Positions 10,755-47,934 of a stretch of 64,000 bases of DNA are shown one piece after another. The first letter of the stretch is position 1. Every line of letters starts with the position of its first letter. The notes beneath the pieces are model-generated. The model was not told where the DNA came from. It did not search any database and worked only from the letters and a program-made list of their open reading frames with translations. Source of the stretch: Octopus sinensis (lineage: Eukaryota); contig NC_043025.1 of the NCBI RefSeq assembly GCF_006345805.1, positions 1,674,001-1,738,000 of the forward strand, in the 5' to 3' direction. The position numbers were made by a program, and so were the translations under genes.

Positions 10755-10972
10755 CTAAACATTTCCATGGGAATTCACTGAGTCTAGATATGTTAATGCC
10801 TCTTTACAATGACGTGACTTAAGAGCATTTCTGAGTGTTTCGAATGGGTGTTTCTTTGAATCACATCCCTTGAACCAATAGTGGAGCATCTGGAAAATCT
10901 GTTCTTTAGTATTTTTTGGATAGTCATTGATGATAAAGTCCAGCTCAGTTTGTGGAACTCCTAATTCCCTTC
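10755..10972 (-). CDS. Module A terminal exon: death domain C-terminal part
   Basis: Acceptor ttttgcag, phase 1. Encodes (G)RELGVPQTELDFIINDYPKNTKEQIFQMLHYWFKG..FETLRNALKSRHCKEALTYL..*, matching the death-domain pattern GRELG..I..D....EQ..QML..W. Confidence 0.85.
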
Positions 10973-11399
10973 CTGCAAAACATACAAAAATAATAAATAA
11001 TTGCAACAACATTAAGAATAAAATAAGAGATGCATATTGCAGATTGTAATAACTATAACAACAATATTATATCGGGAGAGAAATTTGAAAATAGGTCAGA
11101 AAAATGAAAAATATTAGACATTGTTCTCTATTTCTAGGAATGATGATTAAAAGATAACAAAGAAATTGAAATAAAGGATTGAAATTGAGAAAATTGTGTT
11201 TTAAAAGAATTGAAAATTACATTTGAGAGAATTTCTGGTAAAGAGATGGCAGGGAAAATGGTTGTGTGGGTAATAGCGTATGAGACCCTAAAGAATCAAT
11301 TAATATCACCCAAAGAGTCACATTATCTCATCCATCTATTCATATTCTCTACCCTCTATTCATAAAAGGGTTGTGGGGGTAGAGTCGCCAGGGAACCCC

Positions 11400-12780
11400 C
11401 TTCAAAGTTACTTTCATCTTACTGTCCAGTTGGATTCTCAAGCTTGACCAATTAAGACTTTAGATATTATCCAACAATCTCATTCTTGGTCTATTCCTTG
11501 GTCTCCGGTCAAGTGGCTCAGCTTAAAGAATCCGTCTTGCAATTCTTTCTTGTGACAGTCTAATCTCATGTCCATAGAACTGGAATTGTGACCCCTCAAT
11601 GCAGGGAAATAGTGGCTCAACCTGGAGAGACTCCCAAATCTCTGAGCCGTGCGCCTCCTTTTGAGTAACAGAGACCATTTAAAGGAATCCCATTTCAGCT
11701 GCTTTGAATCATCACCTGATCAATACCTGGAATAGTCATCAGTGATGTCTCTCCTACTTCTCCTACACTCACTAATTAACAATTAAAACATATCAACATT
11801 TAGAAATAACTTTAACTATCAATACCAGTAATATTAGGTACACCTGGACCAATTAAAATACAAATAAGCATGACACCAGAATGGCCTTAATTTCACAAAA
11901 TACAAAATATAATACTGTTAGGTACACAACACATATTTTAAAAGACACCAACTTAACCATTTTGGGTTCATGACTCGTAATAAAGATTTCTTTTACTGGA
12001 CCAATGCCACAATTTACAGAGAAGTCCGATAATGGAGAGGTTTTGGAGTAAAGCTAACAATGAGAAGAGTTTTAGTTTTGTAGGAAAGAAGACGGGGTCA
12101 CCACCATCTACACCATACACATGTAGACGCTTAGGGCCTGAAGGAATCACTGCATCTACCAACCTCTACATCATCTGGTGAAGTTACCATATTTCATAAG
12201 CAGGTAGAAGGGGTTAATAGGGATTCTATACTGTGCATTCAATGCACACAATGGGTGATGTGGGGTCAGAGGCAAGTTGATGGAGAGGAAGGAGTTTGTG
12301 AGTAGTAGATATACAGGAATAGTTAGTTGTAAGAACAACTGTGAAAGGCATGGACGATAGTTTCTGTTACCTAGGTGACATAATTGGGAGTGGGGGAAAC
12401 TATTCTGAAAGTAAGGTGATTAGAGAAAAAACTGAGGTGGCAAAATATACAGGGAGCTGTTATCCCTACTGACAAATAAAGAATTCTCTTTCTGAATGAA
12501 GGGTAGATTGTATGATGTATATTTGTAAAGTGCAGCGATGCATTGAATGTGGAGGATGTATGAAAACTGGCAAGAAATGAGGTGAGAATACTTCACGAGA
12601 AGTGTAATGTTAGTGTATTGGAATGCTGGAGAACAGATGAGCTGGAAGAAAAACTGGGTCTCAGTAGAATCAGAGATAGGGCACAAGAGAAGAAATGGCA
12701 CAGTCATGGGAAGAGTATGGAAGATGAAAATTGGATAAAGAAGTGCCAGAATATCCAAATGGAAGAAAACAAGAGGTTAA
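11400..12780. mobile_element. Degenerate RTE-type LINE fragments (minus about 11400-11760, plus about 12040-12780)
   Basis: Remnants resemble the RTE copies at 31.6-33.2 kb and 45.3-47 kb (CRKGV.R.SI.C..C zinc motif; gatagtttctgttacctaggtgac). There are many stops. Confidence 0.6.
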
Positions 12781-14080
12781 ACGTGACAAAGATTCACAGC
12801 AATTGTGGGAGAAGTCATCTAACACAAGTGTGGAGGAATGGACTTAAGATGATGATAATGAATATTATTAGGGTGTTTATTTTACCCCAGTATATGGCCG
12901 GTACATTTTGTATGACTCCCAGGGATATAAGAAATCGACATTGTCATAGATGATGTCTTCTCTAAATTCAGTCAGCTGACTGAGAGGATATTATGTTGAC
13001 ATCCTATGTCAGGGGTCAACTGCTCAATACCCCAGGTAAATACATCTCACTATAGGACAGTCTACTTAGATGTACACAGGTGCCATGGGCAGGTACAAGA
13101 CATTGCTATAAATAATGGGAAGTTTGTATAAATCATACTTTCTGTTCTTACCCATTCACACAAAGAGAAATGGAATATTGTGATGTTCATGATTTCTAAA
13201 TGATATTTGTATTGTAAAGGGTGAGGAAAAAATTTCAAATAAGAAATGAAATCAAGTTAAGTTTACAATATTTTAACATGTACAAGGAACCAATTTTTGT
13301 TAAAAATTAGGTTAAAAAAGTATGGGAGTTTCTTATACATGGATAGCATTATAATCCCTTACAAAACCTTTATGCCAAATTTTAAGCCCCAAAATTTAAA
13401 ACAAGGTAATAGTTTTATAATTTGTGTTTTGTTTCATAATTTGTGTTTTGTTTCATAATTTGTGTTTTGTTTCATTAACTTACCTCGCGGAGTTCAACCC
13501 ACACGCAAAAACATTCAAAGATGGGGCCTGTCAATTTAGAGACAAGGCAATAGGCTGACCTGGGGCTATAACAAAAGTAAAAAAAAACTGGTCAGGAGAG
13601 GGGCTACAACATGTCGCGCAAAAGGCACACTCTTGGGTTAACGACGTTGCATTTGATAATGAGATCCTCTTCTCCTAAGAGAAAGAATGATGCCACACCC
13701 GGAACACTTTTCTTTTGAAGACGTCTGCCAGATTAAAGCAGATATCTGCCACAACCATGACAAAAACAACCTACCAGTGAACATAGTAAAAATCTAAAAA
13801 AACGAAACCATTGACATTAACTCACCTGTTTGTATATAAACAACAACATATTTTAGATCCCTATTTTAAAAGAGAATATTAAATCTTTTGTGTCTTCAAA
13901 TTAATCCATTTTACCAACCATGCAAACCTCGATTTTATGAAGTTTCTTCAATAGAATTACTTTGCAGTTAAACTTTCAATTGGAAATTAAAAGAATGGAA
14001 ACTGTTCTCAATCATTCTAACAAACAGAAGCTCAAGTGAAGGCAAATTTTGTAAAAATCAATTAGGTATTAAATGCTCAC

Positions 14081-14152
14081 CAACAAATTCCCAGTCCCTC
14101 CCTAACTTCGTTGCCACCTTATTGAGATGCATCACCTCCAGTTTTACAGACT
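14081..14152 (-). CDS. Module A 72-nt exon: death domain N-terminal helices
   Basis: attttcag|..|gtgagc, phase 1/1. Encodes (E)SVKLEVMHLNKVATKLGRDWEFV(G), which joins in frame to RELGVP. It is not in the ORF track because it is too short. Confidence 0.82.
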
Positions 14153-17138
14153 CTGAAAATAAGATATTTCCAAATTTTACTCATCATACTTTAATTTCTC
14201 TTTCTCTATCAATGGTCGATATTTTGTCATTATTATTCACATCATCAACAGTCAACTGGTGGTCACTATGGTGTTCAACAGCATTTTTATAATTTCCATA
14301 GTGACCCCATCTAATGACACAATGTTAAGGTCCACACCAGAATGGACTAAACTTCATTTCCCTATTAAGATATCCTCCGTAATCAAATAATCTAGTAATT
14401 ATCACTTCATGCCACTGTTCTCTTCTTCGTTTTGTCTTTCTTCTCTTATATCTGTGCCGAATCAATGGCCTTGTTCTCACGTCTCTTGACTTCACTAACC
14501 AGCATTCTTCTTGCTGCTTAATTCCAATGTCAACCAAATTAGTTCTTCAAAGACCTTACCACACACACATGACACACTACTTCAAGTAGGATAAACACAG
14601 ACCTGATCTCTTTGTTGAAGGTTGTTGGTTGTAATCTTTTATGACCACATCACACTTCACCAGAATGTTCTCTGACTCTAGAAATATCTGAAGACATTAC
14701 AATTCTAGTCAGCTTCTCTGATAATTCTACCTAGGTAGAGCAGAAGACGATGACAGGTGTCTTAAAACCCCCAGTACACATGCACAAAACCTCATCAACT
14801 ACTTATATCAGTTGATCCTCGAGTTATTGCACTGAAAGTACTAGAAATGGTTCAGGAGAAATGAGACTCAAAACATTATAAGCAAGATGAGGATATATAC
14901 CAAGCTGCAAGCACCAGATCTTGTATTTGTCCAGTGCTTTTGACTTAACTATTGCTTTTAACCCATTCTCAGTTCGTGCCATGGTCCATAGCATATTCCT
15001 AAACTTCTTATAGGTTTGTCTTTAACTTTTGGAATCGTTTCTACTACTACTTTGAACTTCACTTGCTTCTCATGTCCTTTGACAAATGAATGCATTAATT
15101 AATTGCCTTAAACCTCCTCCTTGAGCAAGTGATTCGTCCATACAGTCTACCCACAACTATTTGCATATCCTCTTCGTCTCATGTTAGAATTCTAATACCA
15201 TCCACCATTGCCATCTTAGGTGATTCCATTTGAGACATTTCTTCTGGGAAATCTGCTAATCTAAGTAACATCTCCGTAACAGACCCAAGCCAGATGACTG
15301 ATATTTGGCAAGCAACAGCAATTCCAACTTCAAGATGATGCCAGTCTGTTGTGAAACATTCTGATGTCTGCCACATCTTGAAATTGTTACAAAAGCCCCT
15401 CATTAGATCGTCAACCTTCTCCAGTGTATAAAAGAAGTCCACTGCTTCCATCAACAATTTCTTTGGTAGAGACCCATGAGTGCTTGCCAGATCAATTTAT
15501 ACAACATTGAAATTTTCTTGACGATATGACAAAGGTTTTACTGCTTGGGCCACAGTAAAATGCTCCCAAGGCCTTTCAAAAATGTGGTTGGTGTTAGGAA
15601 GGGCATGCCACCAGTGAAAAGCTGGACTGTTTTAAGTGAGAGATATTCTTCAGCCAACGAATAAGAGCTGACCAGGACAGTGACCACCCATCTAAAACAT
15701 GAGAGTATGGAAAACATGATTAATAATGAGTACAATATCATTGATTGTATTGAATCTTGTAGCCAAAATCTGTCTTGAAGAAAGCGAGAGAGAGAGAGAG
15801 AGAGAGAGAGACTTTGATTATCTCAGTAGCAAACCAAACTCTTGTACTTGGATAAGAACAATGGATGTATTAAAAGATTTAGTATCGAAAGAAAGAAAGA
15901 CATGGAAATTGCTTTTGGAACACTTTTCATCTTAAGTCTGTGAGAATATGACATCTGGCTGAACAACAACAAAAGTAAACTCTTAGAAAATTTAAAACAA
16001 ACAAAAACCTTGTCAGTACTCGTTCGTTTACCCTTAAACAGCAACATATTTTATTTCCCTATTCCAAAAGACAATATTAACTCTATTTTGTCTAAACTCA
16101 TTTCTCCATATTACCAAACTCAGAAGATATGTGATGAGATTTCAGTAATATTTTTAAGATTATTAATTTACATAAGAATGATCATAAATATGGAATGCAA
16201 ATGTTATTCAAGCCATGTAGCAAGTGTTGATTACATGTGGTTACAAACAAGGAGTTGTGTGTTCAAATCACATTAGGAATTCCTATTTTATTCCTCTTTG
16301 TATATTTTATACGTGAACATAAATACTTTGTTTATATGTAAACATATGTTCACAGTTCAATAAAATTAATTTAACGATCAATATATTAAATTTTTTTAGT
16401 TATCACAACAATATATGTCCTAACCTGAGACATTCCGGGTACGTACCCTAACAAGAGATGACATCTCTGATCAAACAATGGACTAATATTATTGTTTAGC
16501 ATTTTCATAACATGAAAAATCATGAAGAATTCCTGGAGGATAACTTTGCAAAATATGTTGAAACTATCGATGCCATCTTTCACCAAATAAACATTCACAG
16601 CAACACAAAACAATTCATTAAGCAAAACAATTCATTAAGCAAAACAATTAATTAAGCAATCAAAGCCTCTAATGTTGTTCTTTAATCGCTCAGTTGAGAT
16701 TTTCTCATTGAATCTCCTATTTTACAAAAATCATTCTGATGTTCTTGTTAGTAACACTGTCTTTATCAGATACTGATAAATACTGATAAATCATTAATCC
16801 CCTCTAATCACTCGCAATTGACTGTAAAAACATGATATTTACTGAGGGAATCTGGCAGCATCATTAATATTTCTGTTAATCGCCGTTTAACTTGCTGTAT
16901 CACTCATTAGTCTTATCTTGCAAACAGTATCATCTTGAAGTGCAGCAAGCCTTGTATTTGGACGAAGACAAAGTTTGGTGGATGTGGTGCTTGATAAAGT
17001 ATCACAAAGAAAAGACACTTTTATTATAAATCTGCTACATTTATGACAGGTGTGACTCTACATAGTAACATGAAGTATATTATTCAACAGCATAAAGTCA
17101 ATGAGACAAACAGACAGATCATCAAATAGTATTCTTAC

Positions 17139-17281
17139 CGAATCCACGTTTGTCAACTATAACTTGTTGACACTTGGGACAATTTTTAGGCTCATTTTCT
17201 GAACAGCAATCTTTGCATGTAACAGTGTGCTCACATGGTTGAAACGTCACTGTAGCTTCACTAGATTTACACAACAGACAT
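17139..17281 (-). CDS. Module A RING finger exon (C3HC4, MIB/IAP-like)
   Basis: caacag|a..g|gtaaga, phase 2/1. Encodes CLLC..QPCEHTVTCKDCC..NCPKCQQVIVDKRGF. Confidence 0.88.
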
Positions 17282-18623
17282 CTGTTGAACAAAACATAGA
17301 GGCATATCACTGATGATATTCATTTATAACGAATATTGCATTGAGTACATGTTTAGTGTACAGAATATTATGAGACACAGTAAAAGTACATAAAAATATC
17401 TTCGTTAAACAATTACGTAAATGCAAATGTCTGTGTATATGAACTCTATGCTCACACGTGTCTGTGTGTGTGTGTGTGTGGCATTAACATACATATTGTT
17501 AAATATATGTCTTGACTCTGGTACATCACAAAAAATTGCTTTACACACAACGAGCTACATATATTCCAGAAACATACTCCAATTCTTGTAGAGGGACAAT
17601 TTCTTCTGAACAAAACCTAATCTGTTTAACAAGTTCTCTAAACGTAGACAATTCCTTTTGAATTGTATGGATGGACAGATAGGATACAATTGCCCTAGCT
17701 TCTTGTATTTGTGAACAATTTGTTACAAACCAGTCCACAGTTCTATAATAAAACAATACCCCAAGCAACATGCCTGATATGCACATACCAGACCTGAGGA
17801 TAGTTTTGAAGACTGATGAGTTGAATGCAATAAATGTCAGCTAATCCCTTGATGATCCCAGTCTAAGAAAAAGGTAAAAAATTGTTCTATGATGGATGGG
17901 ATATAGAAAACAGCCCAACTACCAAACTGGTCCTTTCAGTGCCTGACCTGTGTGTCTTTTCCAACCATGGCTGTCAAACAAAAACAACCCATTCACAGGG
18001 AAATTGCGGATATCTGACGTAACATATATACAAACAAAAACACCTTACAGAATTGCACAAATGCTCTGCATCCAAACCCGCCCCTAGTTAAAGCTGAATC
18101 CAGGTTTATAGAGAAGGCCATGTTATCTGCCATACATGATGTAATAATGTTTTTGGTGCATCTCAAGAAATCATTGATTTACAAACATTTTCTCTACAAC
18201 TTGTCCACATCAAATGTGTTCCTCCAAAAACATGTTCTCTGCTTCATTAGATTGGATCAAAACCAAAATTAGTTAGATTAACCTTTTACTGAGGCATGTG
18301 CATACTGTCTAGCTTCTAATGAGGCAGAGTGTGACGAATATTTTGTTGAATCTATTTGTACGGGGGAAGTGCTTATTTACTAAGCTAAGAAACATCTTAC
18401 TCGGGTTTTAACACTTAAAGAGAAATTGCAGAGTGTGGTATAACAATCAACACAACCAATCATGTGAATTTAATCAAAATAGAGTTCTTTGATTGTATTT
18501 TCTATTTCTTGTTCTTCTTACAGTTGTTGTGTGATCTTTGGTCAAAACACAGAATAACGTATTGGGAAAATTAAAACCAAGCAAAATATATGAACATGAT
18601 TATGTACAGAAGGGAAAACTCAC

Positions 18624-18835
18624 TGGTCAATCGTGACATTTTCAGTAAATACTTTCACCGGAGGTGGGAAAAGTCTTTTAATTTTTTCCTTTAAATTTGT
18701 ATCCTTGATAAGATCCAGCGGCATCACATTCTGTTCGTTTCTGTGGTAAAAATTGCTTCCATTGTCGGCCAGATAACAAGCCACTGCTAGACCTGAAGGC
18801 TTGCCTCCTTTGCTAAGCTGGAGCTTCTTGTAGTA
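18624..18835 (-). CDS. Module A 212-nt exon (last ankyrin-like repeat and linker)
   Basis: tttgtag|..ca|gtgagt, phase 0/2. Encodes YYKKLQLSKGGKPSGLAVACYLADNGSNFYHRNEQNVMPLDLIKDTNLKEKIKRLFPPPVKVFTENVTID(Q). Confidence 0.85.
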
Positions 18836-19344
18836 CTACAAATGGTGAAATATATGAAGGACAAGTGCATTATTACACAAATATAAACGAAATCATAGCA
18901 TCAAGTCAAATACAAGAAATATAATGGAAACTATGAATGTTAAAAATAACAGAGAACACACAGACTTATCCAAATATACCAACAATGTTTCCATAATTAA
19001 TAAAGAAACATCTTTGGATGATGAAGGTGAAGTAAAAAAGTAAGAATTGGTGTCACGGTTGAGGAAACACACCAACACATTCTATTTGATAAACTGTTGA
19101 AACTGTTAGTCTGACAGTCAATTCCAGTAATGGAGAGAGAAGGGCATTTGACTGCCAGAATAGCTTCTTCGTATCAAAGTGGACATTTCCACAACACAAA
19201 GATGACCATCAACTGTCTGAAATACAGTCACAAATCTGTAGAGACCGTTACCCATGTGGGAATCAGTGAGTTGCTATAAGTGCGCAAAATTTTACAGTAA
19301 ATACTGTTAGATCTACTGATGGTTAGATGTTGATGTATCTGTAT

Positions 19345-19399
<55 letters not shown>

Positions 19400-19504
19400 T
19401 GTGAATGAAAGTAAGTGAACAAATGACAGAGGGGCACTCAAACAATTCATTGGAAGTTACATGTGTGGATCAAAACAGTTTGGATCATTAAACTATTTTG
19501 ATCC

Positions 19505-19534
<30 letters not shown>

Positions 19535-19536
<2 letters not shown>

Positions 19537-19665
19537 TTATTATATAGAAGGAGCTTCTACAGGACTAGAACTGTTTCATTCAAGAGAAATCTTCAGGAAG
19601 CTCCTGAAGATTTCTCTTGAATGAAACAGTTCTAGTCCTGTAGAAGCTCCTTCTATATAATAAAT
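19535..19665. repeat. Perfect palindrome (64-bp arms, 3-nt spacer) containing a CUGAAGA..GAAAC..GUC hammerhead-like core, flanked by (TA)n
   Basis: atttattatatagaaggagcttctacagg..cttcagga-agc-tcctgaag..cctgtagaagctccttctatataataaat. Likely a PLE pLTR remnant with a 5' inversion. Confidence 0.85.
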
Positions 19666-19756
19666 TAATTTTACTCTACTATGTATTGAGTACCTTATTT
19701 ACTGTGGTTAACCCCGAATCAACCCGGGACCTACATATATATATATATATATATAT

Positions 19757-20068
19757 ATTCAAACATATAAGGGATGGCCATAATAGGACATCCGACTCAC
19801 TAGAAAGAGGAGTTAAACTCCAAACCACTAATATCGGGTAAACGTTTTTATTTCTCTTTCCATTTCAGAATTACAACTGTTAGTGTCTTGGAGTTTAACT
19901 GCTCTTTCTAGTGAGTCGGATGTCCTATTATGGCCATCCCTTATATGTTTGAATGTACATTATATAGTCTATTGACTATTTTTTCTTTCTCACTTGACCG
20001 CAGGTAGCGGATAATTTTTCTAGAATTTTTTGCTACCCTAAAATTTATTAATTAATAAAAATAAATGA

Positions 20069-20070
<2 letters not shown>
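19757..20070 (+). mobile_element. Diverged relative of the 492-bp ribozyme repeat, truncated, with a 5' inverted segment
   Basis: Arms 19757-19823 / 19888-19954. ttctagtgagtcggatgtcctattatggcc..gtctattgactatt..ttttgctaccct aligns with ttctagtgggtgaatggcctattatggcc..gtctatgactatt..ttttggcaccct in the 41-43 kb array. Confidence 0.7.
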
Positions 20071-20118
<48 letters not shown>

Positions 20119-20159
20119 ACATATATACTTATATATGTATATATATTATATACTCCATT

Positions 20160-20407
20160 ACTCTTTTACTCTTTTTACTCTTTTACTTGTTTCAGTCATT
20201 TGACTGCGGCCATGTTGGAGCACCGCCTTTAGTCGAGCAAATCGACACCTGGACTTTTTCTTTGTAAGCCCAGTACTTATTCTATCCGTCCCTTTTGCCG
20301 AACCGCTAAGTGACGGGGACGTAAACATACGAGCATCGGTTGTCAATCAATGCTAGGGGGACAAACACCGACAGACAAATCACACACACACACACACACA
20401 CACACAC

Positions 20408-20438
<31 letters not shown>

Positions 20439-20615
20439 TATATATATATATACATATATACGACAGGCTTCTTTCAGTTTCCGTCTACCAAATTCACTCA
20501 CAAGGCATTGGTCGGCCCTGGGCTATAGCAGAAGACACTTGCCCAAGATGTCAGGCAGTGGGACTGGACCCGGAACCATGTGGTTGGTTAGCAAGCTACT
20601 TACCACACAGCCACT
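20160..20615 (-). mobile_element. Two SINE copies separated by CA/TA microsatellite
   Basis: ttttactcttttacttgtttcagtcatttgactgcggcc.. and gacaggcttctttcagtttccgtctacc..ttaccacacagccact resemble abundant octopus SINEs. The second has a tRNA-like end on the minus strand. Family assignment is from recall. Confidence 0.6.
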
Positions 20616-20934
20616 ATGTATATATATATATGTATGTATGTATGTATGTATATATGTACGTACGTATGTATGTATATTGCTTTATTGTATCCATTCTCTA
20701 GTGTTCTAACATTCAATATTGTTATGACATGTCCACAAGAAGCCAGAGGATAAATGTTGTGTACAAGAAGTAAGACAGGGAGCTGTTTTTTCAGAATCCC
20801 TCATAGAATGAAATGAATGTATTTATCATGGCACTTGCATTCTAAAGGTTGTCATCATGTCTCTCTGTTTCTTTTTCTATCTCTTATAAATAAATCCACA
20901 CGTATATATATTTACAAATAATTCTAAAACTTAC

Positions 20935-21144
20935 CTTATCGAAGACAGTTAAGGATTCATCCTCAGAATGGAACTCCTCTTTCCTCACCGCAAGGTGAAG
21001 ACAATTGTTTCCGATATCATCGACCACATTTACGTCTGCTCCTTTAGAAATGAATTCCTGCATTATTCTGAAGTTGCCGCTAGAGACAGCTTGAAGAAAT
21101 GGTGTCATATTATCACAGTTTGTTATGTTCAATTTCACCGAATC
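20935..21144 (-). CDS. Module A first exon: two ankyrin repeats (210 nt)
   Basis: cacaaag|gat..aag|gtaagt, phase 0/0. Encodes DSVKLNITNCDNMTPFLQAVSSGNFRIMQEFISKGADVNVVDDIGNNCLHLAVRKEEFHSEDESLTVFDK. Confidence 0.88.
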
Positions 21145-23893: not shown

Positions 23894-23937
<44 letters not shown>

Positions 23938-35143: not shown

Positions 35144-35212
35144 TGACTTGCTGTGATAAAATCTGTGAACTACGTGATACCTTCGGGGCCTTCTCCATAA
35201 ATTCTGAAGCCT
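35144..35212 (-). CDS. Module B 69-nt symmetric exon (linker between RING and death domain)
   Basis: tctttcag|..|gtaagt, phase 1/1, open frame (E)ASEFMEKAPKVSRSSQILSQQV. The flanking intron sequence is homologous to that around the 72-nt exons. Confidence 0.62.
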
Positions 35213-36719: not shown

Positions 36720-36859
36720 CGAATCCACTTTCGTTAATCGTAACTTGACACTGGGGACACTGTTTAGATGGACTTTTGCGACAGCAATCATTACATATTA
36801 CAACATGTCCACAAGGGTGAACTCTCTCTGTGTCTTTATCACCTTTGCAAAAATGACAT
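36720..36859 (-). CDS. Module B RING finger exon (C3HC4)
   Basis: ccacag|a..g|gtaaga, phase 2/1. Encodes CHFC..HPCGHVVICNDCC..QCPQCQVTINESGF. Confidence 0.88.
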
Positions 36860-37698
36860 CTGTGGAATAAAATGCGAACACATCTCATCAATAACATTCG
36901 CTTAAAACACGTATTACATTGTGAGCATGTTTAGAGTATAGAACATAATGAGGTACTAGAGTACGTCACAAGTCCTTCTTGAAGGAATTACATATGCATT
37001 CCACTTACACAAACACACATGCATGTAAACACATATTGATAAATACATGTCTTCGAACTGATACGTTACAAAAATTGCGGATATCTGACGTAACATATAT
37101 AAAAACAAAAAATCTTTACAAAATTGCACAAATACCCTGCATCCAAACCCGCCCCTAGTTAAAACTGAATCCAGGTTTATAGAGAAGGCCATGTTATCTG
37201 CCATGCATGATGTAATAATGTTTTTGGTGCATCTCAAGAAATCATTGATTTATAAACATTTTCTCTACAACTTGTCCACATCAAATGTGTTCCTCCAAAA
37301 ACATGTTCTCTGCTTCATTAGATTGGATCAAAACCAAAATTAGTTAGATTAACCTTTTACTGAGGCATGTGCATACTGTCTAGCTTCTAATGAGGCAGAG
37401 TGTGACGAATATTTTGTTGAATCTATTTGCACGGGGGAAGTGCTTATTTACTAAGCTAAGAAACATCTTACTCGGGTTTTAACACTTAAAGAGAAATTGC
37501 AGAGTGTGGTATAGCAATCAACACAAACAATCAATCATGTGAATGTAATCAAAATAGAGTTCTTTGATTGTATTTTCTATTTCCTGACCTTCTTGCAATT
37601 GTTGTGTGGTCTTTGGTCAAAACACAGAATACCGTTTTGGGAAAATTAAAACCAAGCAAAATATATGAACATCATTATGTACAGAATAGAAAACTCAC

Positions 37699-37910
37699 TG
37701 GTCAATCGCGACATTTTCAGTAAATACTGTCACCGGAAGTGGGAAAAGTGTTTTAATTTTTTCCTTTAAATTTGTATCCTTGATAAGATCCAGCGGCATC
37801 ACATTCCGTTCGTTTCTGTGGTAAAAGTTGGCTCCATTGTCGGCCAGATAACAAGCCACTGCTAGACCTGAAGGCTTGCCTCCTTTGCTAAGCTGGAGCT
37901 TCTTGTAGTA
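37699..37910 (-). CDS. Module B 212-nt exon
   Basis: Paralog of 18624-18835 with the same splice sites. Encodes ..GLAVACYLADNGANFYHRNERNVMPLDLIKDTNLKEKIKTLFPLPVTVFTENVAID(Q). Confidence 0.85.
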
Positions 37911-38419
37911 CTACAAATGGTGAAATATATGAAGGACAAGTGCATTATTACACAAATATAAACAAAATCATAACATCAAGTCAAATACAAGAAATATAAT
38001 GGAAACTATGAATGTTAAAAATAACAGAGAACACACAGACTTATCCAAATATATCAACAATGTTTCCATAATTAATAAAGAAACATCTTTGGATGATGAA
38101 GGTGAAGTAAAAAAGTAAGAATTGGTGTCACGGTTGAGGAAACACACCAACATATTCTAGTTGATAAACTGTTGAAACTTTTAGTCTGACAGAAAATTCC
38201 AGTAATGGAGAGAGAAGGGCATTTGACTGCCAGAATAGCTTCTTTGTATCAAAGTGGACATTACCACAACACAAAGATGACCATCAAATGTCTGAAATAC
38301 AGTCACAAATCTGTAGAGACCGTTACTCATGTGGGAATCAGTGAGTTGCTCCAAGTGCGTAAAATTTGACAGTAAATACTGTTAAATCTGCTGATGGTTA
38401 GATGTTGAGGTATTTGTAT

Positions 38420-38484
<65 letters not shown>

Positions 38485-38810
38485 TGTACGCAAAGCATTC
38501 AAACACTGAGATTTGAAATCAGATGTCACAACAGTTCATATCATCTGTGGATAAATTTTAAAATTGATAATATCACCACCAGTGACATAGGTGGATCGCA
38601 GACGCAATAGTATTAAATAGCTATGAATTAATAATTTGCACGAAGCGTTTGGATGCTTAAGAAGCATCCACCTGCTAGAAATAAGAGCTATAGTTTTCAA
38701 TTTATACACCGTACCGCAACAAGATAACAGAGGAAAAGAGTATGCAAGGAAAACAGAAAGGATTAAAACATTTAACAGCACAAATAAAGATATTATGCAA
38801 TTAGGGATAT

Positions 38811-38865
38811 CCACAAACCAGGTTTGGGCTTTTGAGTATTTAAACCCTGAGCCTCATCAGTGTGG
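38811..38865 (-). ncRNA. Inactivated minimal type I hammerhead (G12 to C) in a PLE pLTR-like remnant
   Basis: Reverse complement reads ccaca CTGATGA ggct..agcc CAAA c-ctg-g TT tgtgg. All three stems are intact, but GAAA is changed to CAAA at position 38826. Confidence 0.72.
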
Positions 38866-38890
38866 CCTACCGAATCATAATATATATATA

Positions 38891-38942
<52 letters not shown>

Positions 38943-39075
38943 TATAGTTTAACAATTAAGGATAATCTCTTAATAAGGGATCTTAACAAGAAATTATCGG
39001 GTAGCTAGCGTGAAAACCTCATAAAAGAAAAGAATTCGAAAATAATTTTTTTCTTTTGAACAAATTAATTATATC

Positions 39076-39338
39076 TATATTGTATAGAGGGCATTATTAC
39101 ACATAAATGCCTCACACTAGGAGGGACAAAGTCATTACTACCAAAATTATACTAATCAAACCCAAATGCAGTTTTTCAAAGCAAGACATTTAAAAAAATG
39201 AATTTAGTTCTGAACTAAATTCATTTTTTTAAATGTCTTGCTTTGAAAAACTGCATTTGGGTTTGATTAGTATAATTTTGGTAGTAATGACTTTGTCCCT
39301 CCTAGTGTGAGGCATTTATGTGTAATAATGCCCTCTAT

Positions 39339-39346
<8 letters not shown>
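39076..39346. repeat. Perfect 271-bp palindrome (135-bp arms, 1-nt centre at 39211) beside (TA)n
   Basis: tatattgtatagagggcattattac..gaatttagttc-t-gaactaaattc..gtaataatgccctctatacaatata. Confidence 0.92.
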
Positions 39347-39398
<52 letters not shown>

Positions 39399-39973
39399 AT
39401 ATATATATACGTATATATATATATATATGCGTGAGCGGAAAAGACCACCCGAAAGACCTCCACAACGGTGGAGTGACGATTTCATGAGGACGATTGGAAT
39501 CACGTGGATGAGAAAGGCGCGATACAGAGAGGAGTGGACAGCGAGCTGTGACCAGCGGTGTCAAATGGACGCCTGACGGACTGGTCGGTCAAAGTGATCA
39601 AGTGATATATATACATACATACATGCATACATACTTACATACATATGAATATATATGTGTGTGTATGTATGGCAGTACATACCAAACTTAAGTACCGGAG
39701 CACACGCAAAGGACCCTGCTTTATTGTATCCAATCTCTAGTGTTCTAACATTCAATATTGTTATGACATGTCCACAAGAAGCCAGAGGATAAATGTTGTG
39801 TACAAGAAGTAAGACAGGGAGCTGTTTTTTCAGAATCCCTCATAGAATGGAATGAATGTATTTATCATGGCACTTGCATTATAAAGGTTGTCATCATTTC
39901 TCTCTGTTTCTCTTTCTATCTCTCATAAATAAATCCACACGTATATATATTTACAAATAATTCTAAAACTTAC

Positions 39974-40183
39974 CTTATCGAAGACGGTTAAGGATTCATC
40001 CTCAGAATGGAACTCCTCTTTCCTCACCGCAAGGTGAAGACAATTGTTTCCGTTACCATCGACCACATTTACGTCTGCTCCTTTAGAAATGAATTCCTGC
40101 ATTATTCTGAAGTTGCCGCAAGAGACAGCTTGAAGAAATGGTGTCATATTATCACAGTTTGTTATGTTCAATTTCACTGAATC
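39974..40183 (-). CDS. Module B first exon: two ankyrin repeats (210 nt)
   Basis: caaag|gat..aag|gtaagt, phase 0/0. Differs from 20935-21144 at 3 amino acids. Confidence 0.88.
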
Positions 40184-41058
40184 CTTTGTCGAAGTAAAAA
40201 TAGAGAATGAAAATTTACATGAAAACCAGGGTGTCATTACTGCCTTCTACTGGGTACTTGATCAAACCGATCACGTACATTTCATGTTTGTCAGTAAAGT
40301 TAGCCTTGCATAAGGTCCCTCTATAACTTATGGCTGTGTTTAAGAGACATGATAAATCTATTTAGATGTCATAAACAGATTGGTTCAGCCTAATCTATGT
40401 TTGTCCCTCGCTATAGTAAGTTTTAAGGGAGTTAAACTGCACTGAGCACAAGATTAATGGATTAAGCTTGGGAAAAAAGAACTATACGACTTTTTCTATA
40501 CATTTGATGTTAATATATTAATAAGGGGCTCAGAATAGTTATATGTATATATATAGTTATATATATTCATAATTAATCAATATAGGGTGCCAAAAAAAAT
40601 TTTGTAGAATTTTTTTGCCACCAGCGGCCTAGTGGGAAAAAATTAAATAGTCATAGACCATTTTTAAGTTCAAAATCAACAATCAAGGAACGGCCATAAT
40701 AGGCCATTCACCCACTAGAAATAACAGCCAAAGCTTCAACCGCAAATAAAAGTCAATTCCGTAAACAGGAGAAAATTTAAAAAACATTTACCCTGTAATT
40801 TCTTATACGGTGCACCGTTTCGTCTGCTGTTTAATGGTAAACTAACCTGATTAAATTAAATCAAGCCAATCTTCCATAGTCACCCTATATTGATTAATTA
40901 TGAATTTTCTGGTTAATTCCGTAATGGAATCGACGGCTTATATTTATTTGCTGCCGATAAATTTGGCGCGAGTGCGATGATTTGAAAATTTTAGGTCAGA
41001 TATTAACTTGGCAGGGTCGGAAATGCCTCGTGTAAATATCTGTTCCGACTTGTGGCTA

Positions 41059-41163
41059 TTTCTTACTGAAGAATCTGAGGGCCTATGGAAGATTGGCTTG
41101 ATTTAATTTAATCAGGTTAGTTTACCATTAAACAGCAGACGAAACGGTGCACCGTATAAGAAA
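41059..41163 (+). ncRNA. Type I hammerhead ribozyme, array unit 1
   Basis: Stem I tttctta/taagaaa, CUGAAGA, stem II tctg/caga (A-C at the base, large insert), GAAA, palindromic stem III acggtgcaccgt, GUA cleavage after 41156. Confidence 0.8.
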
Positions 41164-41550
41164 TTACAGGGTAAATGTTTTTTAAATTTTCTCCTGTTTA
41201 CGGAATTGACTTTTATTTGCGGTTGAAGCTTTGGCTGTTATTTCTAGTGGGTGAATGGCCTATTATGGCCGTTCCTTGATTGTTGATGTTGAACTTAAAA
41301 ATGGTCTATGACTATTTAATTTTTTCCCACTAGGCCGCTGGTGGCAAAAAAATTCTACAAAATTTTTTTTGGCACCCTATATTGATTAATTATGAATTTT
41401 CTGGTTAATTCCGTAATGGAATCGACGGCTTATATTTATTTGCTGCCGATAAATTTGGCGCGAGTGCGATGATTTGAAAATTTTAGGTCAGATATTAACT
41501 TGGCAGGGTCGGAAATGCCTCGTGTAAATATCTGTTCCGACTTGTGGCTA

Positions 41551-41655
41551 TTTCTTACTGAAGAATCTGAGAGCCTATGGAAGATTGGCTTGATTTAATT
41601 TAATCAGGTTAGTTTACCATTAAACAGCAGACGAAACGGTGCACCGTATAAGAAA
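41551..41655 (+). ncRNA. Type I hammerhead ribozyme, array unit 2
   Basis: Same fold. Cleavage after 41648. Confidence 0.8.
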
Positions 41656-42041
41656 TTACAGGGTAAATGTTTTTTAAATTTTCTCCTGTTTACGGAATTG
41701 ACTTTTATTTGCGGTTGAAGCTTTGGCTGTTATTTCTAGTGGTGAATGGCCTATTATGGCCGTTCCTTGATTGTTGATGTTGAACTTAAAAATGGTCTAT
41801 GACTATTTAATTTTTTCCCACTAGGCCGCTGGTGGCAAAAAAATTCTACAAAATTTTTTTTGGCACCCTATATTGATTAATTATGAATTTTCTGGTTAAT
41901 TCCGTAATGGAATCGACGGCTTATATTTATTTGCTGCCGATAAATTTGGCGCGAGTGCGATGATTTGAAAATTTTAGGTCAGATATTAACTTGGCAGGGT
42001 CGGAAATGCCTCGTGTAAATATCTGTTCCGACTTGTGGCTA

Positions 42042-42146
42042 TTTCTTACTGAAGAATCTGAGGGCCTATGGAAGATTGGCTTGATTTAATTTAATCAGGT
42101 TAGTTTACCATTAAACAGCAGACGAAACGGTGCACCGTATAAGAAA
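42042..42146 (+). ncRNA. Type I hammerhead ribozyme, array unit 3
   Basis: Same fold. Cleavage after 42139. Confidence 0.8.
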
Positions 42147-42532
42147 TTACAGGGTAAATGTTTTTTAAATTTTCTCCTGTTTACGGAATTGACTTTTATT
42201 TGCGGTTGAAGCTTTGGCTGTTATTTCTAGTGGGTGAATGGCCTATTATGGCCGTTCCTTGATTGTTGATGTTGAACTTAAAAATGGTCTATGACTATTT
42301 AATTTTTTCCCACTAGGCCGCTGGTGGCAAAAAAATTCTACAAAATTTTTTTTGGCACCCTATATTGATTAATTATGAATTTTCTGGTTAATTCCGTAAT
42401 GGAATCGACGGCTTATATTTATTTGCTGCCGATAAATTTGGCGCGAGTGCGATGATTTGAAAATTTTAGGTCAGATATTAACTTGGCAGGGTCGGAAATG
42501 CTCGTGTAAATATCTGTTCCGACTTGTGGCTA

Positions 42533-42637
42533 TTTCTTACTGAAGAATCTGAGAGCCTATGGAAGATTGGCTTGATTTAATTTAATCAGGTTAGTTTACC
42601 ATTAAACAGCAGACGAAACGGTGCACCGTATAAGAAA
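42533..42637 (+). ncRNA. Type I hammerhead ribozyme, array unit 4
   Basis: Same fold. Cleavage after 42630. Confidence 0.8.
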
Positions 42638-43023
42638 TTACAGGGTAAATGTTTTTTAAATTTTCTCCTGTTTACGGAATTGACTTTTATTTGCGGTTGA
42701 AGCTTTGGCTGTTATTTCTAGTGGGTGAATGGCCTATTATGGCCGTTCCTTGATTGTTGATGTTGAACTTAAAAATGGTCTATGACTATTTAATTTTTTC
42801 CCACTAGGCCGCTGGTGGCAAAAAAATTCTACAAAATTTTTTTTGGCACCCTATATTGATTAATTATGAATTTTCTGGTTAATTCCGTAATGGAATCGAC
42901 GGCTTATATTTATTTGCTGCCGATAAATTGGCGCGAGTGCGATGATTTGAAAATTTTAGGTCAGATATTAACTTGGCAGGGTCGGAAATGCCTCGTGTAA
43001 ATATCTGTTCCGACTTGTGGCTA

Positions 43024-43128
43024 TTTCTTACTGAAGAATCTGAGGGCCTATGGAAGATTGGCTTGATTTAATTTAATCAGGTTAGTTTACCATTAAACAG
43101 CAGACGAAACGGTGCACCGTATAAGAAA
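43024..43128 (+). ncRNA. Type I hammerhead ribozyme, array unit 5
   Basis: Same fold. Cleavage after 43121. Confidence 0.8.
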
Positions 43129-45299
43129 TTACAGGGTAAATGTTTTTTAAATTTTCTCCTGTTTACGGAATTGACATTTATTTGCGGTTGAAGCTTTGGC
43201 TGTTATTTCTAGTGGGTGAATGGCCTATTATGGCCGTTCCTTGATTGTTGATATAGTTATATATATATATATACATATATGTCAAGAAAATCGCACAGAT
43301 ATACACATGGTGTGTGTGTCTTGTTAGTTCATGGGCTGGTTGCATTTTTAGGTGTAAGAGAATATATTCTCAATGCGTCTCGCGTTTGAAACACCTGAAC
43401 GTAAGTCATAAGCAATCAAGGCAACTCACACCATATGTACGTATGTATCTGTGGTATAGCTTTAAAGAGATTTGTTATGCCATGGTGGAATAATGTGAGA
43501 AGGTACAAAGTAAACTACAAAAGGAAAAGAGTGGACTGGGTGCCCCAGCACGAGTGCTTTTTCTTGGCACCAGCACCAGCAGGGTGACCAAATAACTTGT
43601 AAGACAAAGACTTCTCAGCTGAGGGAAAGAATGAAATTGAGGGAAGTGGCTGTGTACCAGGCAGGAGGTTTGACCATGATAGGTGGGAGTAGAGATAGTT
43701 CTCTTATTATAGAGGAAATACTTGGCTGCCCCAGTAGGACAAGGAAGGAAAAGGGAAGATGGGAGTTATGGAGAAAATAGAGAGACAGAATGAAAGAGGA
43801 AGAGAAATAGATGGTGGTGCAGATGCATTGCGGCCTACACTAGGTGAATGGTGGGAAAGTGGAGTATAAGTATTACAAATGAGATAGAGGTTGATGTAGC
43901 ATAAGAGTGTGAGGGAAGATGATTAGAGATGGGGAGGAGGGGACTGTAGCAAATGATGGAGGGAGAAACTGGAGTGGCTGGGGAGGTGGGGGTATTGGTA
44001 GATAATGTGGGAGTATTGAGTGCAGATAGGCATGTGAGGTAGAGTGGAGGGGCCTGCAGCAGGTGATGATCACGGGTGGTGGGATGGGAAGTTGTTGGGA
44101 GGATGGGTCGTGAAGGTGTTTGGAGATTGTATGTAAGATAATTTCTCATAACTTTGTTCCACATCTTCCTGGATCAATCTCGCCCACAGTTTCGTTCCAC
44201 AATAAGAGATCAGCGATTTTTATGCAACCGTCCTCATTCATACACATCACATGGCCGTGCAAACGCAGTCTTCTCTCTTGCACACAACGTCTGAGACGTC
44301 TTATACCCAAGTTTTCTCTTAAGTCTTTTACAGTTTGTAGTATACATGCACATACATACACACATACATACATACATACACACATACATACATACATGCA
44401 TGCATACATACATACATACATACTTACATGAATACATACATACATACATACATACATACATACATGCATACATGTATACACATTTATATACACAAACACA
44501 CATACAAATGATATCTCTTAAGGTATCGTAGCCAGTTGAAAACAGCGAGAGAAGTTTTAATTACAAGAGAACAAATTAATTCGTTTTAAATATGCAAACA
44601 ATTCTTCAAATTAGTTTCTGACATTAATATATTCATCACTCATCAAATCTCAACAATTCTTCATTTTATTATATTTTTCATTGATGGAGAAGAACAATTG
44701 CTTGTTTGGTTCCTGTTCTTCAACTGGGTTTGGTACCAGATGGCATTCCATCTCAGCTATAATGAGATGGTTTTAACATACAGGTTGACAATTGTAATAT
44801 ATTTACCTATGCTGGTGTATTTAATGGATTTGAGGAGAAATATATTCATGTGAGGGTTTGTGTATTTATGTGTGTGTGTGTGATATATATACATATATAT
44901 ATCATCATTATCATCCTCATATCATCATTGTTTAACATCCGTTTTCTATGCTGCTAGCATGGTTTGGACATTTCGACTGGGGTCTGGGAAGCCAGGAGAC
45001 TGCACCAGGCTCCATTCTGGTCTGGCAGTGTTTCTACAACTAATACCCTTCCTAATGCCAACCATTCCGTGAGTGTAGTGGGTCCTACGCATGTAGGCTA
45101 GCAACGGTCATGATCGAATGGTGATTTCCACCTTGACCGGCACGGAGCCAGTCAAGGTGGCACTGGCATCGGCCATGTTCAGAGAGTGCTTTTTGCATGC
45201 CACCGGCACGGGTATCGCAACTACAATTTCCATTTGATTTTCACTTTGATGTTGATGTACTTGACTCAACAGGTCTCCTCAACACAGCAAGTCACCCTA

Positions 45300-47000
45300 C
45301 GATCCAAGGTACTTCTAAATGGGCTGCGGCTGGTTACACGAAACTGGTGTAGGATACAGCCATGAATTCATTTTATTTGCTGGGTATTCACAGTCATAGG
45401 ATATCTCCAGAGGTCCCGGTCTTTCGTTATAGCCTCTGTGAGGCCCAACGTACGAAGGTCATGCTTGACCACCTCATCCTATGTCTTCCTGGGTCTACCT
45501 CTACCCCAGATTCCTTCAACTGTTTGGGCGTGGCATTTCTCTCAAGGCACTTATATTCTGTCGTGTGTGCACACTGACATTACACATCCAGCGGATCATG
45601 CTAGCTTCATTTCTTTCGAGCCTACACATGTCCTCCGCAATCATGGTCCATGTTTCACTGCCGTGAAGCATGGCAGTTCCCACACATGCGTTGTACTATC
45701 TACCTTTCACTCTGATTGAGAGGCCCTTTGTCACCCGTAGGGGTAGAGGCTTTCTAAACTTTGCCCAGGCTCGTCTTACTCTAGTGGTGACATTCTCAGA
45801 GCATCAACCCCCACTTCTAACGTGGTCACTTAGGTAGCGGTAGCTATAAACTACATCTAGTGTCTCCCCCTGGAGTGTGATAGAATCTGTTTTCTGAGCA
45901 TATGTGGTGTTTATTGCACCTGTGCATCTGCTGCACACGAAAGCTATCTTCCCGGTTAATCTTCCTTTGATGTTGCTGCACCTCTTATATGTCCATAGCT
46001 TACACAGGGTACGTCTTATGGAGCTTCTACCTACACCTTTTCTACAGATCGAGCAGGGCCACCTACCTGAAGAGGTGCGTGGTGGGTTTCCCTTACTACT
46101 TGCTAGAACTCTAAGGATTTTTGATTCTAAACCTTGCTTCCACACCTGAAATTTCTTCCCTAGTTCTGGTAGTGATTCTGCTATTAAGGCCAGGTCATCA
46201 CCATTCTTCACTATAGTCACTGCTAATACTAACCTTACTAACACTCTCTCTGTATAGGGCCTGTACAGCCCTTATTAGCCATTCGTCAATCTCCAGTTTC
46301 CTCATCGCCCACCAGATAAGGCTTTCTCCAAGTCCACAAAATCTAAGTATAGCAGTTTATCTTTGGCTAGGTATTTCACCTGCAGTTGTCAAACCAGGAA
46401 TATAGCATCATTGGTGCTTCTACCCAGCACAAAACCAAACTGCTTCTCATCTAAGAAGACTCTCTCCCTGATGAGATGGGCTGATCTCCGTGACCTGATC
46501 CAGCAGTTTGATACCCCTGTAGTTATTTCTATCTAGAGCATCACCTTTACCCTTGTAGCAGTTGACTATGGTGCTGCTACGCCAGTCGTTGGGTATGTCT
46601 CCATTATGAACTACCTGGTTTACAATGCGGGTGACTAGGCCATAGCCCACACCACCAGATATTTTAAGCATCTCAGCAATGATTCCTGATGGATCGGGGC
46701 TTTTCGTGGCTCCATACCCTTAATTGCTTGATCTACTAGGGAGCTGTCTATTCGAATAGCTGGTCCCTCTAAGGGTCGACATTTCGCAGGCTTTTCTTCT
46801 CCCATTCATTCTCCACGTTCAGCAGTCTTTCATAATGGCTTCTCGAAGACTCTTTCTTTTCCGAATCGTTAAAAGCAAGTGCACCATCATCCATGCGGAC
46901 GCATTTCTCTCCTGTGACATCACAATTTTCTCTCACCCACTGTCTTGCAATCCGAAGTACCTCAGTTCTTTGGTCCTCACGTCGCTGAATATTGGCAAAC
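45300..47000 (-). mobile_element. Degenerate RTE-clade LINE fragment
   Basis: Motifs DDLALIAESLPEL; SGRWPCSICRKGVGR; MLKISG..YKGKGDALDRNNYRGIKLLDQV. Many stops. Confidence 0.82.
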
Positions 47001-47296
47001 TTCCTCTTTATATATACATATATATATATATATAAAATATAAATTATAGATAAAACCATTATTATGCAACTTAAACAGTGATAGACATAAACCAAAACAA
47101 TATTTTATGTGTTATTTATGTATTGGCTTATGTCAATCACTGTTTGAATTGCCTAATAGTGGTTTTATCTCTAATTCATATTTTATATATTTATATTGTG
47201 AAATTTGATTTAATACTAAATTGAATTTTTCCCTGTAAGTTTGGAATTATACTCCCTATACACCCCCACACACAAACACACACACATATATATATA

Positions 47297-47335
<39 letters not shown>

Positions 47336-47897
47336 TGTTGTCCCTCAATGCTGCTCCCTCCTCTCGAGAGGTCATGTTCAGCAAGTTACTTGGTACCCTC
47401 ACAACTGCTGGTGCCACACACAAAAAAACACCCAGTAACACTCTGTATAGTGCCAATACCAAGAGTAGAGTTTGGTGCAGTCTTCTGACTTACCAGCTCC
47501 TATCAAAACGTCCAACCCATGCCAGCATGGAAAATGGACGTTGAATGATGATGATGTTGATGGTGGTGGTGGTGGTGGTTGTGGTGGTGATGGCGAATGG
47601 CAGACATAAAATGTGATATATTTGGATTAATTTCATCATAATCGTGTACATATTTTCTATAATCTAGCCATTAAAAATGGTATTGTCTGTGGTGGTGGTC
47701 AGCTGAACTGTCTCCACACCATTACCATTACTATTATTATCATGTTTCTCCACAGACCCAAGACCTGTCATTTATAGGTCAGTGGGGTACAATTGATTAA
47801 ATCTACCCCCAGTATTTCACTGGTACTCTGTTAATGTTAATATTGAGCAGATCAAAAAATACAAGAGAGTGTGTATAATATGCATATGTCAACTAAC

Positions 47898-47934
47898 CTG
47901 GGATAGCATCAATGCCACGACATCATAGTCTTGC
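47898..47934 (-). CDS. 37-nt exon linking the giant ankyrin exon to the 3' modules
   Basis: Long pyrimidine tract ..tttttag|g caa gac tat gat gtc gtg gca ttg atg cta tcc cag|gttagt, phase 2/0. It completes GDTPLHRAVV(R)QDYDVVALMLSQ|DSVKLN. Confidence 0.8.

Follow-up and report, generated by a model that had tools for sequence, protein, structure and literature searches.

A predicted ankyrin-RING-death gene of Octopus sinensis and the candidate head-less paralogous cassette that follows it

The window analysed here is a stretch of 64,000 nucleotides from Octopus sinensis (positions 1,674,001-1,738,000 of contig NC_043025.1, assembly ASM634580v1), and everything of interest in it sits on the minus strand. 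An upstream part made up of two N-terminal exons, a 3,929-nt exon carrying ankyrin repeats and one of 37 nt precedes two tail cassettes in tandem, B (40183-25285) and A (21144-10755), each of which consists of two ankyrin exons, an exon for a MIB-type RING and exons for a death domain. The arrangement is read here, with about even confidence, as a complete giant-array gene that ends in B and, behind it, a paralogous cassette without a head, A, which is probably expressed alone. A sequence-only reading of the same DNA had instead proposed one array that switches between two effector tails. There is no direct support for such a switch at the locus, where RefSeq models A as a separate gene and A appears to be a truncated cassette resembling the tail of a third gene, F. 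The other possibility raised in that reading, namely that A is an orphan partial duplicate or is driven by its own promoter, is now favoured, given the RefSeq gene for A and its F-like, truncated ancestry.

The Predicted Complete Gene and Tail B

The complete gene would start at an ATG at 59460 and run through two N-terminal exons, an exon of 38 ankyrin repeats and the 37-nt exon into cassette B, where a stop codon is followed by an AATAAA at ∼25.07 kb. The N-terminus encoded from this in-frame ATG (MPSLSSLQ...) matches that of paralog P0021 (MSSLSSLQINK). Position 59436, previously used as the start for counting, is not an exon start, and the ATG at 59460 fits the family N-terminus. The chain lengths counted from 59436, 5,130 nt via A and 5,172 nt via B, were both reproduced, the latter requiring a 69-nt linker exon and a 72-nt exon; from the ATG the coding sequences (CDS) are 5,154 and 5,196 nt, respectively. 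AG/GT sites are present at every exon of both chains, all of which are phase-compatible. The upstream exons close, as had been described, at a phase-0 donor at 47898 (CAG/GTTAGT, the slash marking the exon boundary), and the phase-0 acceptors of B (40183) and A (21144) proved to be nearly identical, with a 1-base difference in the 20 nt upstream. Translation and a check of AG/GT sites also confirmed that all eight RING ligands and the splice sites are kept in both tails.

The ankyrin open frame (52742-48789) comprises 1,317 codons, with splice sites at 52721 and 48793. Within this exon an 816-bp block of eight repeats is tandemly duplicated (49507-51240, minus strand), self-identity at an 816-nt offset being 97-100%, and this duplication represents either a very recent expansion or an assembly collapse/expansion artefact. 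The 37-nt exon is the canonical bridge of the family from array to tail: the same junction (...MLKQ/DSV...) is found in the paralog proteins P0021, P0016, and P0014, and copies of the exon are found 5′ of the tails of sister genes F (3.52 Mb, 1.8 Mb away), D (8.80 Mb), and E (9.35 Mb), each of which has a large array exon, the 37-nt exon and one tail. Cassette B is taken as the canonical tail because its acceptor is the first to follow the 37-nt exon, which is where all other family members have their tail. The helix-1 exons of the death domains of A and B were found by a phase-aware AG...GT scan, and translation of the weakly conserved intron patches at 26.5-26.8, 13.7-14.0, 36.3-36.6, and 16.6-17.0 kb revealed no coding sequence. 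The 69-nt linker exon is present in B and not in A.

The RING of tail B has no near relative in the genome. In own-genome searches, which covered the 2.72-Gb assembly in 13,516 contigs, at least 36 matches to the B RING exon were obtained, none of them with more than 70% identity, and the best identity found for the last exon of B in a whole-library phmmer search was 52%. The top phmmer match for that exon, P0256, was rejected as a low-complexity artefact.

Upstream of the coding exons, a conserved block (61707..62787) is likely to be a promoter or a 5′ non-coding exon region; the first exon annotated for the Octopus vulgaris orthologue of D (locus L020, in which the model starts at 10001) falls in the homologous block. 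In D, E, and F (L014, L016, and L017) this block directly abuts the ankyrin array, and these copies are without the 8.9 kb that holds the two N-terminal coding exons of the window gene. Among these four genes, a canonical start is present in the window gene only.

Cassette A: Truncation and Relationship to Gene F

Cassette A starts abruptly in mid-intron, 2.1 kb past the stop codon of B. Its upstream edge, 23177, lies inside the cassette intron (equivalent to B 44894, D 4972, E 4895, and F 7049), and its alignments to B, D, E, and F all begin at this position, just 3′ of where the paralogs have their 37-nt exon. The upstream exons are absent. That the 21145-25284 interval contains neither a 37-nt exon nor an ankyrin exon, as had been noted, was confirmed by a search for the 37-nt exon with up to three mismatches, which returned only 47898-47930, and by a genome-wide search, which placed no copy there; the interval is made up entirely of the 3′ untranslated region (UTR) of B, local tandem repeats and the first part of the duplicated intron. 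Between the conserved B 3′ UTR and 23177 are 1.7 kb of tandem repeats specific to B, and the B/A junction falls within tandem-repeat sequence.

The closest relative of A is the tail of gene F and not the adjoining tail B. Over A 23177-18001 and B 44894-37072 the two cassettes are 96-97% identical by blastn, introns included (a 2.7-kb insert in B, 40566-43251, interrupts the match), and beyond this region only patches of 68-80% remain. With F, in contrast, A is collinear from 21911 to 6651, 4 kb past the A stop; identity is 93-97% in all five exons, with the RING and death-domain exons at 94-96%, and climbs from 87% to 95.7%, the latter value holding across the final 9.2 kb, introns and flank, as far as 6651. 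The corresponding figures for the window gene itself against F are 84% in the upstream block, 74% at the array start and 90% in the 37-nt region. A simple tandem duplication of one tail was rejected as the origin of the pair, the 3′ halves having different relatives and the A flank not repeating that of B. Comparison of the paralogs thus shows A as a 5′-truncated cassette akin to the F tail rather than a diverged twin of B. Most likely, A was the tail of a different, F-like paralog, whose head was lost or which was copied without it, and which now lies behind a complete gene; its 5′ half would later have been homogenised with the adjoining B by gene conversion or unequal exchange, probably in that direction. 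The fall in A-F identity from 96% to 87% toward the 5′ end of A is attributed to this homogenisation of the 5′ halves.

A second tail without a head, C, lies 70 kb away on the opposite strand (1.598-1.605 Mb; RefSeq gene XP_036370845). Neither an array nor a 37-nt exon was found within 7.8 kb upstream of it, and it is a 95-99% copy of the D tail with a different intron breakpoint. Tail cassettes may therefore have been repeatedly copied, or left behind, without heads.

RefSeq models A as a gene with three isoforms (XP_036370842/43/44), namely the full form, one in which the 72-nt exon is skipped and one with an alternative last exon at 13565. Both XP_036370842 and XP_036370843 equal the translation of A letter for letter, and the A exons are therefore independently validated. 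In all three isoforms the CDS starts at a Met at 21108 within A exon 1, to the exclusion of the 37-nt exon; had that exon been part of A transcripts, it would presumably have supplied the start in the RefSeq pipeline through its in-frame ATG (ALMLSQ). Cassette A would accordingly be its own transcription unit, encoding a protein of 211-272 aa with ∼2 ankyrin repeats, a RING and a death domain, and an AATAAA lies ∼215 nt past the stop codon in each of the two tails. Independent transcription of A is suggested by these models.

Signs of Constraint in the Two Cassettes

The five A exons contain no stops or frameshifts and have lost no splice sites, and the death domain of A is intact, unlike that of F. 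When differences between A and B were polarised with C-F as outgroups, 0 were A-derived, 6 B-derived and 7 ambiguous in exons 1-2, compared with 26 A-derived and 45 B-derived in 3.4 kb of non-coding sequence; the contrast (0:6 vs. 26:45) is suggestive only, a one-sided binomial calculated by hand giving P of ∼0.065. The RINGs of A and C differ by one synonymous change in surroundings where introns are ∼8% different. By the Nei-Gojobori method, the ratio of non-synonymous to synonymous substitution (dN/dS) is ∼0-0.1 in the RING exon, compared with ∼0.9-1.7 in the two ankyrin exons and 0.5-2.5 in the death-domain helix-1 exon, so that a conserved RING sits between fast-changing surfaces.

Domains, Fold, and Family

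The ankyrin, RING, and death-domain calls made earlier for both tails were borne out by Pfam. Scores for zf-C3HC4_3 (PF13920; cutoff 27) are 36.3 bits in A and 28.3 bits in B, and those for Death (PF00531; cutoff 22.6) are 37.5 bits in A (profile positions 2-78 of 86) and 31.4 bits in B (4-80 of 86). The RING ligands of both tails are spaced C-x2-C-x10-C-x-H-x3-C-x2-C-x7-C-x2-C, and across 37 family proteins six Cys/Pro columns of the RING are invariant and two further Cys are at least 90% conserved. By Pfam, the N-terminal 175 aa and both tails contain only Ank, zf-C3HC4_3, and Death, with no MIB/HERC2 or ZZ domain, and the ankyrin exon makes up the remainder of the protein.

An AlphaFold2 model of the 272-aa A protein, with a mean predicted local distance difference test score (pLDDT) of 89.8, has an ankyrin-like helical part, a floppy linker, the RING and a helical bundle. 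In the modelled death domain (residues 183-269) pLDDT is mostly above 90 and DSSP assigns five helices; the model shows the six-helix bundle of the death-domain superfamily. Foldseek comparison of this domain with FADD, RAIDD, RIPK1, and ankyrin-G gave target-normalised template modelling (TM) scores of 0.78-0.83 and root-mean-square deviations of 1.6-2.9 Å, and the ankyrin part of the model matches the MIB1 ANK structure 8v0e. A sequence search of PDB returned designed ankyrin proteins only.

By homology, the tail is a MIB-derived RING ligase, of putative activity, fused to a death domain, and not a MIB orthologue. The window gene is, on the same grounds, one complete member of a large Octopus-specific, MIB2-derived family of ankyrin-RING-death proteins. 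At least 129 own-genome matches to tail cassette C were obtained, and RefSeq proteins named 'MIB2-like' that combine Ank, RING, and Death number dozens in O. sinensis, O. vulgaris, and Octopus bimaculoides. Some family members carry 30-40 ankyrin repeats within one exon. A MIB-type ankyrin-RING fused to a death domain was not found outside Octopus in homology or literature searches, and a literature search on this Octopus family returned nothing.

Alternative Explanations

Several observations weigh against a complete gene ending in B with a separately expressed A. The independent start of A is taken from RefSeq protein models, in which UTRs are not seen. Searches for a protein with both array and tail, made with tail B, tail A, and a chimera of N-terminus and tail as queries, found no protein of 188-2,933 aa in the searched databases that has the N-terminus of the window gene or tail B, and none in which the array is joined to either tail, so that the link from the array to B is unconfirmed by annotation. 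The polarised exon changes fall on B, which could therefore be the drifting copy. In an O. vulgaris paralog, transcript-based isoforms demonstrate that an upstream gene can acquire, by splicing, tail exons from a paralog further downstream.

In the O. vulgaris orthologue of D (CATOCA020000001.1:817110-852928, gene 10001-25819), the 3-kb array is modelled as an intron, an exon 5′ of the array being spliced straight to the 37-nt exon to give a 265-aa product that consists of the tail only. This skipped array, together with the lack of any protein carrying the N-terminus or tail B, makes annotation of giant arrays unreliable, which cuts both ways.

An unlikely, albeit still appreciable, alternative is that the array belongs to one gene with two endings. 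Transcripts from the array promoter would join 47898 to 40183 and end after B, or read through the poly(A) site of B and join 47898 to 21144, and in a further variant a B exon would be spliced to the matching A exon, so that the same sensor would acquire a different RING and/or death domain. In favour, each chain is open with compatible phases, the acceptors of B and A are nearly identical, each tail has its own AATAAA, and the cassette exons share phases, such that B/A hybrids would also be in frame; in addition, the A exons look constrained. The O. vulgaris proteins P0049 and P0053 provide a precedent: they share their first 293 residues (ANK and RING, L021 11909-20122) and have different death domains, one encoded 3.7-7.6 kb downstream and the other 54-61 kb downstream, where the exons of the following paralog lie. 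In the O. vulgaris annotation, isoforms were added only through PASA updates from Iso-Seq and RNA-seq (PMC10700109). The gene for P0049 and P0053 is annotated across 72 kb of this locus (L021, OX597842.1:28223696-28315372), and another protein, P0135 (712 aa), reads as two family members fused head to tail. Against two endings at the window locus, the Met in A exon 1 is the start of each of the three RefSeq isoforms of A, which hence are without the 37-nt exon, and the sister genes D, E, and F have no second tail. With equal acceptors, the proximal one and the poly(A) signal of B should win co-transcriptionally, and a truncated paralog fully explains the arrangement, no functional explanation being needed.

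It is distinctly unlikely that A is a decaying relic, that is, a transcribed or silent partial pseudogene that looks intact through youth and gene conversion. Such a relic would account for the absence of the N-terminal exons, array and 37-nt exon from A, and with an A-F divergence of ∼4-6% its 780-nt open frame is weak evidence of selection. dN/dS is ∼1 in many pairs for the ankyrin and helix-1 exons. The sister giant-array genes D, E, and F look damaged or visibly decaying, homopolymer sequencing error being an alternative: the RING exon of E has a frameshifting 1-nt deletion, the last death-domain exon of F has several frameshifting indels, mostly in A-runs, and the array of D is split into frames of 330 and 590 codons. 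Decay is opposed by the five undamaged A exons, by the lack of A-specific substitutions in exons 1-2 compared with 26 in the surrounding introns, by the single synonymous change that separates the A and C RINGs, and by the three isoforms listed for A. Three RefSeq isoforms normally require transcript support in that pipeline.

A broader and very doubtful possibility is that the family as a whole constitutes a combinatorial cassette system, in which read-through splicing would join one ankyrin 'sensor' to B, A, or B/A 'effector' modules, with short RING-death proteins also produced free. This suggestion is based on the tail-exon phases shared by all paralogs, on sequence exchange between neighbours and on the occurrence of head-less cassettes beside complete genes.

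Finally, it is highly improbable that A is the working tail and B an intruder, whose foreign RING and death domain were inserted between the 37-nt exon and A and are now skipped or decaying: D, E, and F all carry the type-1 RING of A and none that of B, which would give the ancestral giant-array gene an A/C-type tail, no annotated protein in the searched databases contains the B RING or death domain, and the substitutions that exons have gained since A and B separated are on B, whereas the 74-90% similarity of the 5′ parts of the window gene to F, against 94-96% for A and the F tail, fits derivation of A from a different gene that resembles F; the proximal acceptor and a poly(A) signal belong to B, and the four 3′ exons of B have kept open frames and good splice sites at ∼25-30% divergence from any relative, which implies long purifying selection.

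Proposed Action and Related Systems

In the complete gene ending in B, as in the shorter product of A, the RING would be expected to recruit an E2, the death domain to drive homotypic assembly and the ankyrin surface to select partners. For the head-less A protein, this might mean a role either as a free RING-death-domain adaptor or in competition with the long forms.

Among known systems, MIB2 and MIB1 share with the window gene an order of ankyrin repeats followed by a RING of the Pfam type zf-C3HC4_3, and the family is named 'MIB2-like' in RefSeq. In Lingula and Owenia MIB2, the stretch to which the window tail aligns is C-terminal and extends from the ankyrin repeats to the first RING, with 32-34% identity over 82% of the tail. 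These MIB2 matches carry PF06701, PF00569, and PF18346, whereas the window protein is without MIB/HERC2, ZZ, and REP domains, has one RING in place of two or three, adds a death domain after the RING and has an ankyrin region of ∼40 repeats, encoded by one exon. Ankyrin-G/B/R, ANKDD1, NF-κB p100/p105, and DAPK1 likewise combine an ankyrin array with a C-terminal death domain, and the modelled A death domain superposes on that of ankyrin-G (4o6x) with a TM score of 0.80. These proteins differ in that no RING stands between array and death domain, and the window protein is without their ZU5/UPA, RHD, or kinase domains.

The coupling of a C-terminal IAP/MIB-type RING to a death-fold module is also seen in the RING and death-fold adaptors cIAP1/2, which have a CARD and the same RING type. 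By analogy, ubiquitin ligase activity in the window family may be controlled by, or delivered to, homotypic death-fold assemblies. The window protein differs in having a death domain after the RING instead of a CARD before it and in lacking BIR domains. Conjoined or read-through transcripts and clusters of alternative last exons resemble the locus in their tandem, phase-compatible cassettes on one strand, and the O. vulgaris isoform described above uses the death-domain exons of the next gene; the only models of A in the window, however, are stand-alone.

Locus and Sequence Context

The features of the window are collected in Table 1. The sequence is AT-rich, with many microsatellites, and contains no runs of N and hence no assembly gap; an assembly gap or mis-scaffold as the cause of the two tails is therefore without support. 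Open frames resembling those of reverse transcriptases and long interspersed nuclear elements (LINEs) lie at 27500-29300, 31500-33500, 45800-46720, and 58480-58740, where they occupy the long introns within cassette B as well as the one that follows coding exon 1. It is owing to such frames in its introns that cassette B is 4.5 kb longer than A. The LINE fragment between the 37-nt exon and B is absent from D and E, the homology with D jumping from 47724 to 44862.

Some further observations concern copies outside the gene. A 2.4-kb element, probably a transposon, is present at 3602-5964 of the window and at L009 (C29:1591388-1593761), the copies being 89% identical; it lies 3′ of cassette A and 5′ of cassette C, in the same relative orientation. 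A small unplaced contig (G000:C2699:1078-1266) carries an 89% identical copy of coding exon 1 of the window gene, which may be a further paralog or an alternative haplotype. Exon matches of two adjoining family genes at 1.597-1.63 Mb of C29 recur in mirror order at 9.32-9.36 Mb, a pattern that points to either a duplicated haplotype or a large segmental duplication in inverted orientation.

Table 1. Features of the window in order of transcription (positions are those of the whole stretch).
Feature	Position	Strand	Basis or remark
Conserved upstream block	61707..62787	-	blastn 84-87% to D/E/F, 87% to L020 9124-10227
Coding exon 1, ATG at 59460 (MPSLSSLQINE...)	59285..59460	-	sequence; donor TG/GTAAGT
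Coding exon 2, ankyrin	57044..57200	-	AG/GT sites, reading frame, Pfam Ank
Giant single ankyrin exon, ∼38 units of 102 nt	48793..52721	-	1317-aa open frame; TRF (Tandem Repeats Finder) period 102, 37.9 copies
37-nt exon (R-QDYDVVALMLSQ), phase-0 donor CAG/GTTAGT	47898..47934	-	splice sites
LINE/reverse-transcriptase fragment, intron between 37-nt exon and cassette B	44892..47700	-	reverse transcriptase-like open reading frames 45804-46271, 46447-46719
Cassette B 5′ half: intron, exon 40183-39974, exon 37910-37699	37072..44894	-	blastn blocks vs. A
Tail B exon 1, ankyrin, phase 0-0	39974..40183	-	splice sites, frame
Tail B exon 2, ankyrin/MIB2-like pre-RING region	37699..37910	-	splice sites, frame
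Tail B RING exon (CHFC...CPQC)	36720..36859	-	translation, Pfam
Tail B 69-nt linker exon, phase 1-1	35144..35212	-	resembles linker of paralog P0037, ...STAKILSVKQQQV
Tail B 72-nt exon, death-domain helix 1	26875..26946	-	adding it lifts Death score to 31.4 bits
Tail B last exon, death-domain helices 2-6 and stop	25285..25478	-	translation, Pfam
AATAAA 215 nt past B stop	25065..25070	-	within 3′ UTR block conserved in A, C, D, E, F
B-specific 3′ flank: local tandem repeats and microsatellite	23178..24848	-	ends at non-homologous junction with cassette A
Cassette A and 3′ flank	6651..23177	-	alignments to B, D, E, F
Tail A exon 1; RefSeq CDS start Met 21108	20935..21144	-	splice sites; RefSeq proteins
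Tail A exon 2	18624..18835	-	splice sites, frame
Tail A RING exon	17139..17281	-	protein sequence identical to RINGs of C and D
Tail A 72-nt exon, death-domain helix 1	14081..14152	-	skipped in RefSeq isoform X2
Alternative terminal coding exon, RefSeq isoform X3 (...APGQPIALSLN, then stop)	13531..13565	-	RefSeq protein
Tail A last exon, death domain and stop	10755..10972	-	AATAAA at 10542 and 10515

Implications for the Octopus Family

A tandem second tail may resemble a designed switch, but the best reading is a truncated paralog next to a complete gene, which is a common by-product of fast turnover in gene families, and the result is in this respect mostly deflationary. Of moderate interest is the family itself, an Octopus-specific expansion in which a conserved RING is combined with ankyrin and death-domain surfaces that evolve at a roughly neutral rate, and in which cassettes are shuffled between paralogs. 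Were the swapping of death domains regulated, it would represent a new way for an invertebrate to diversify its immune adaptors, and the cassette system, if true, would be a 3′-end analogue of clustered-exon diversity serving innate immune or cell-death signalling in the octopus.

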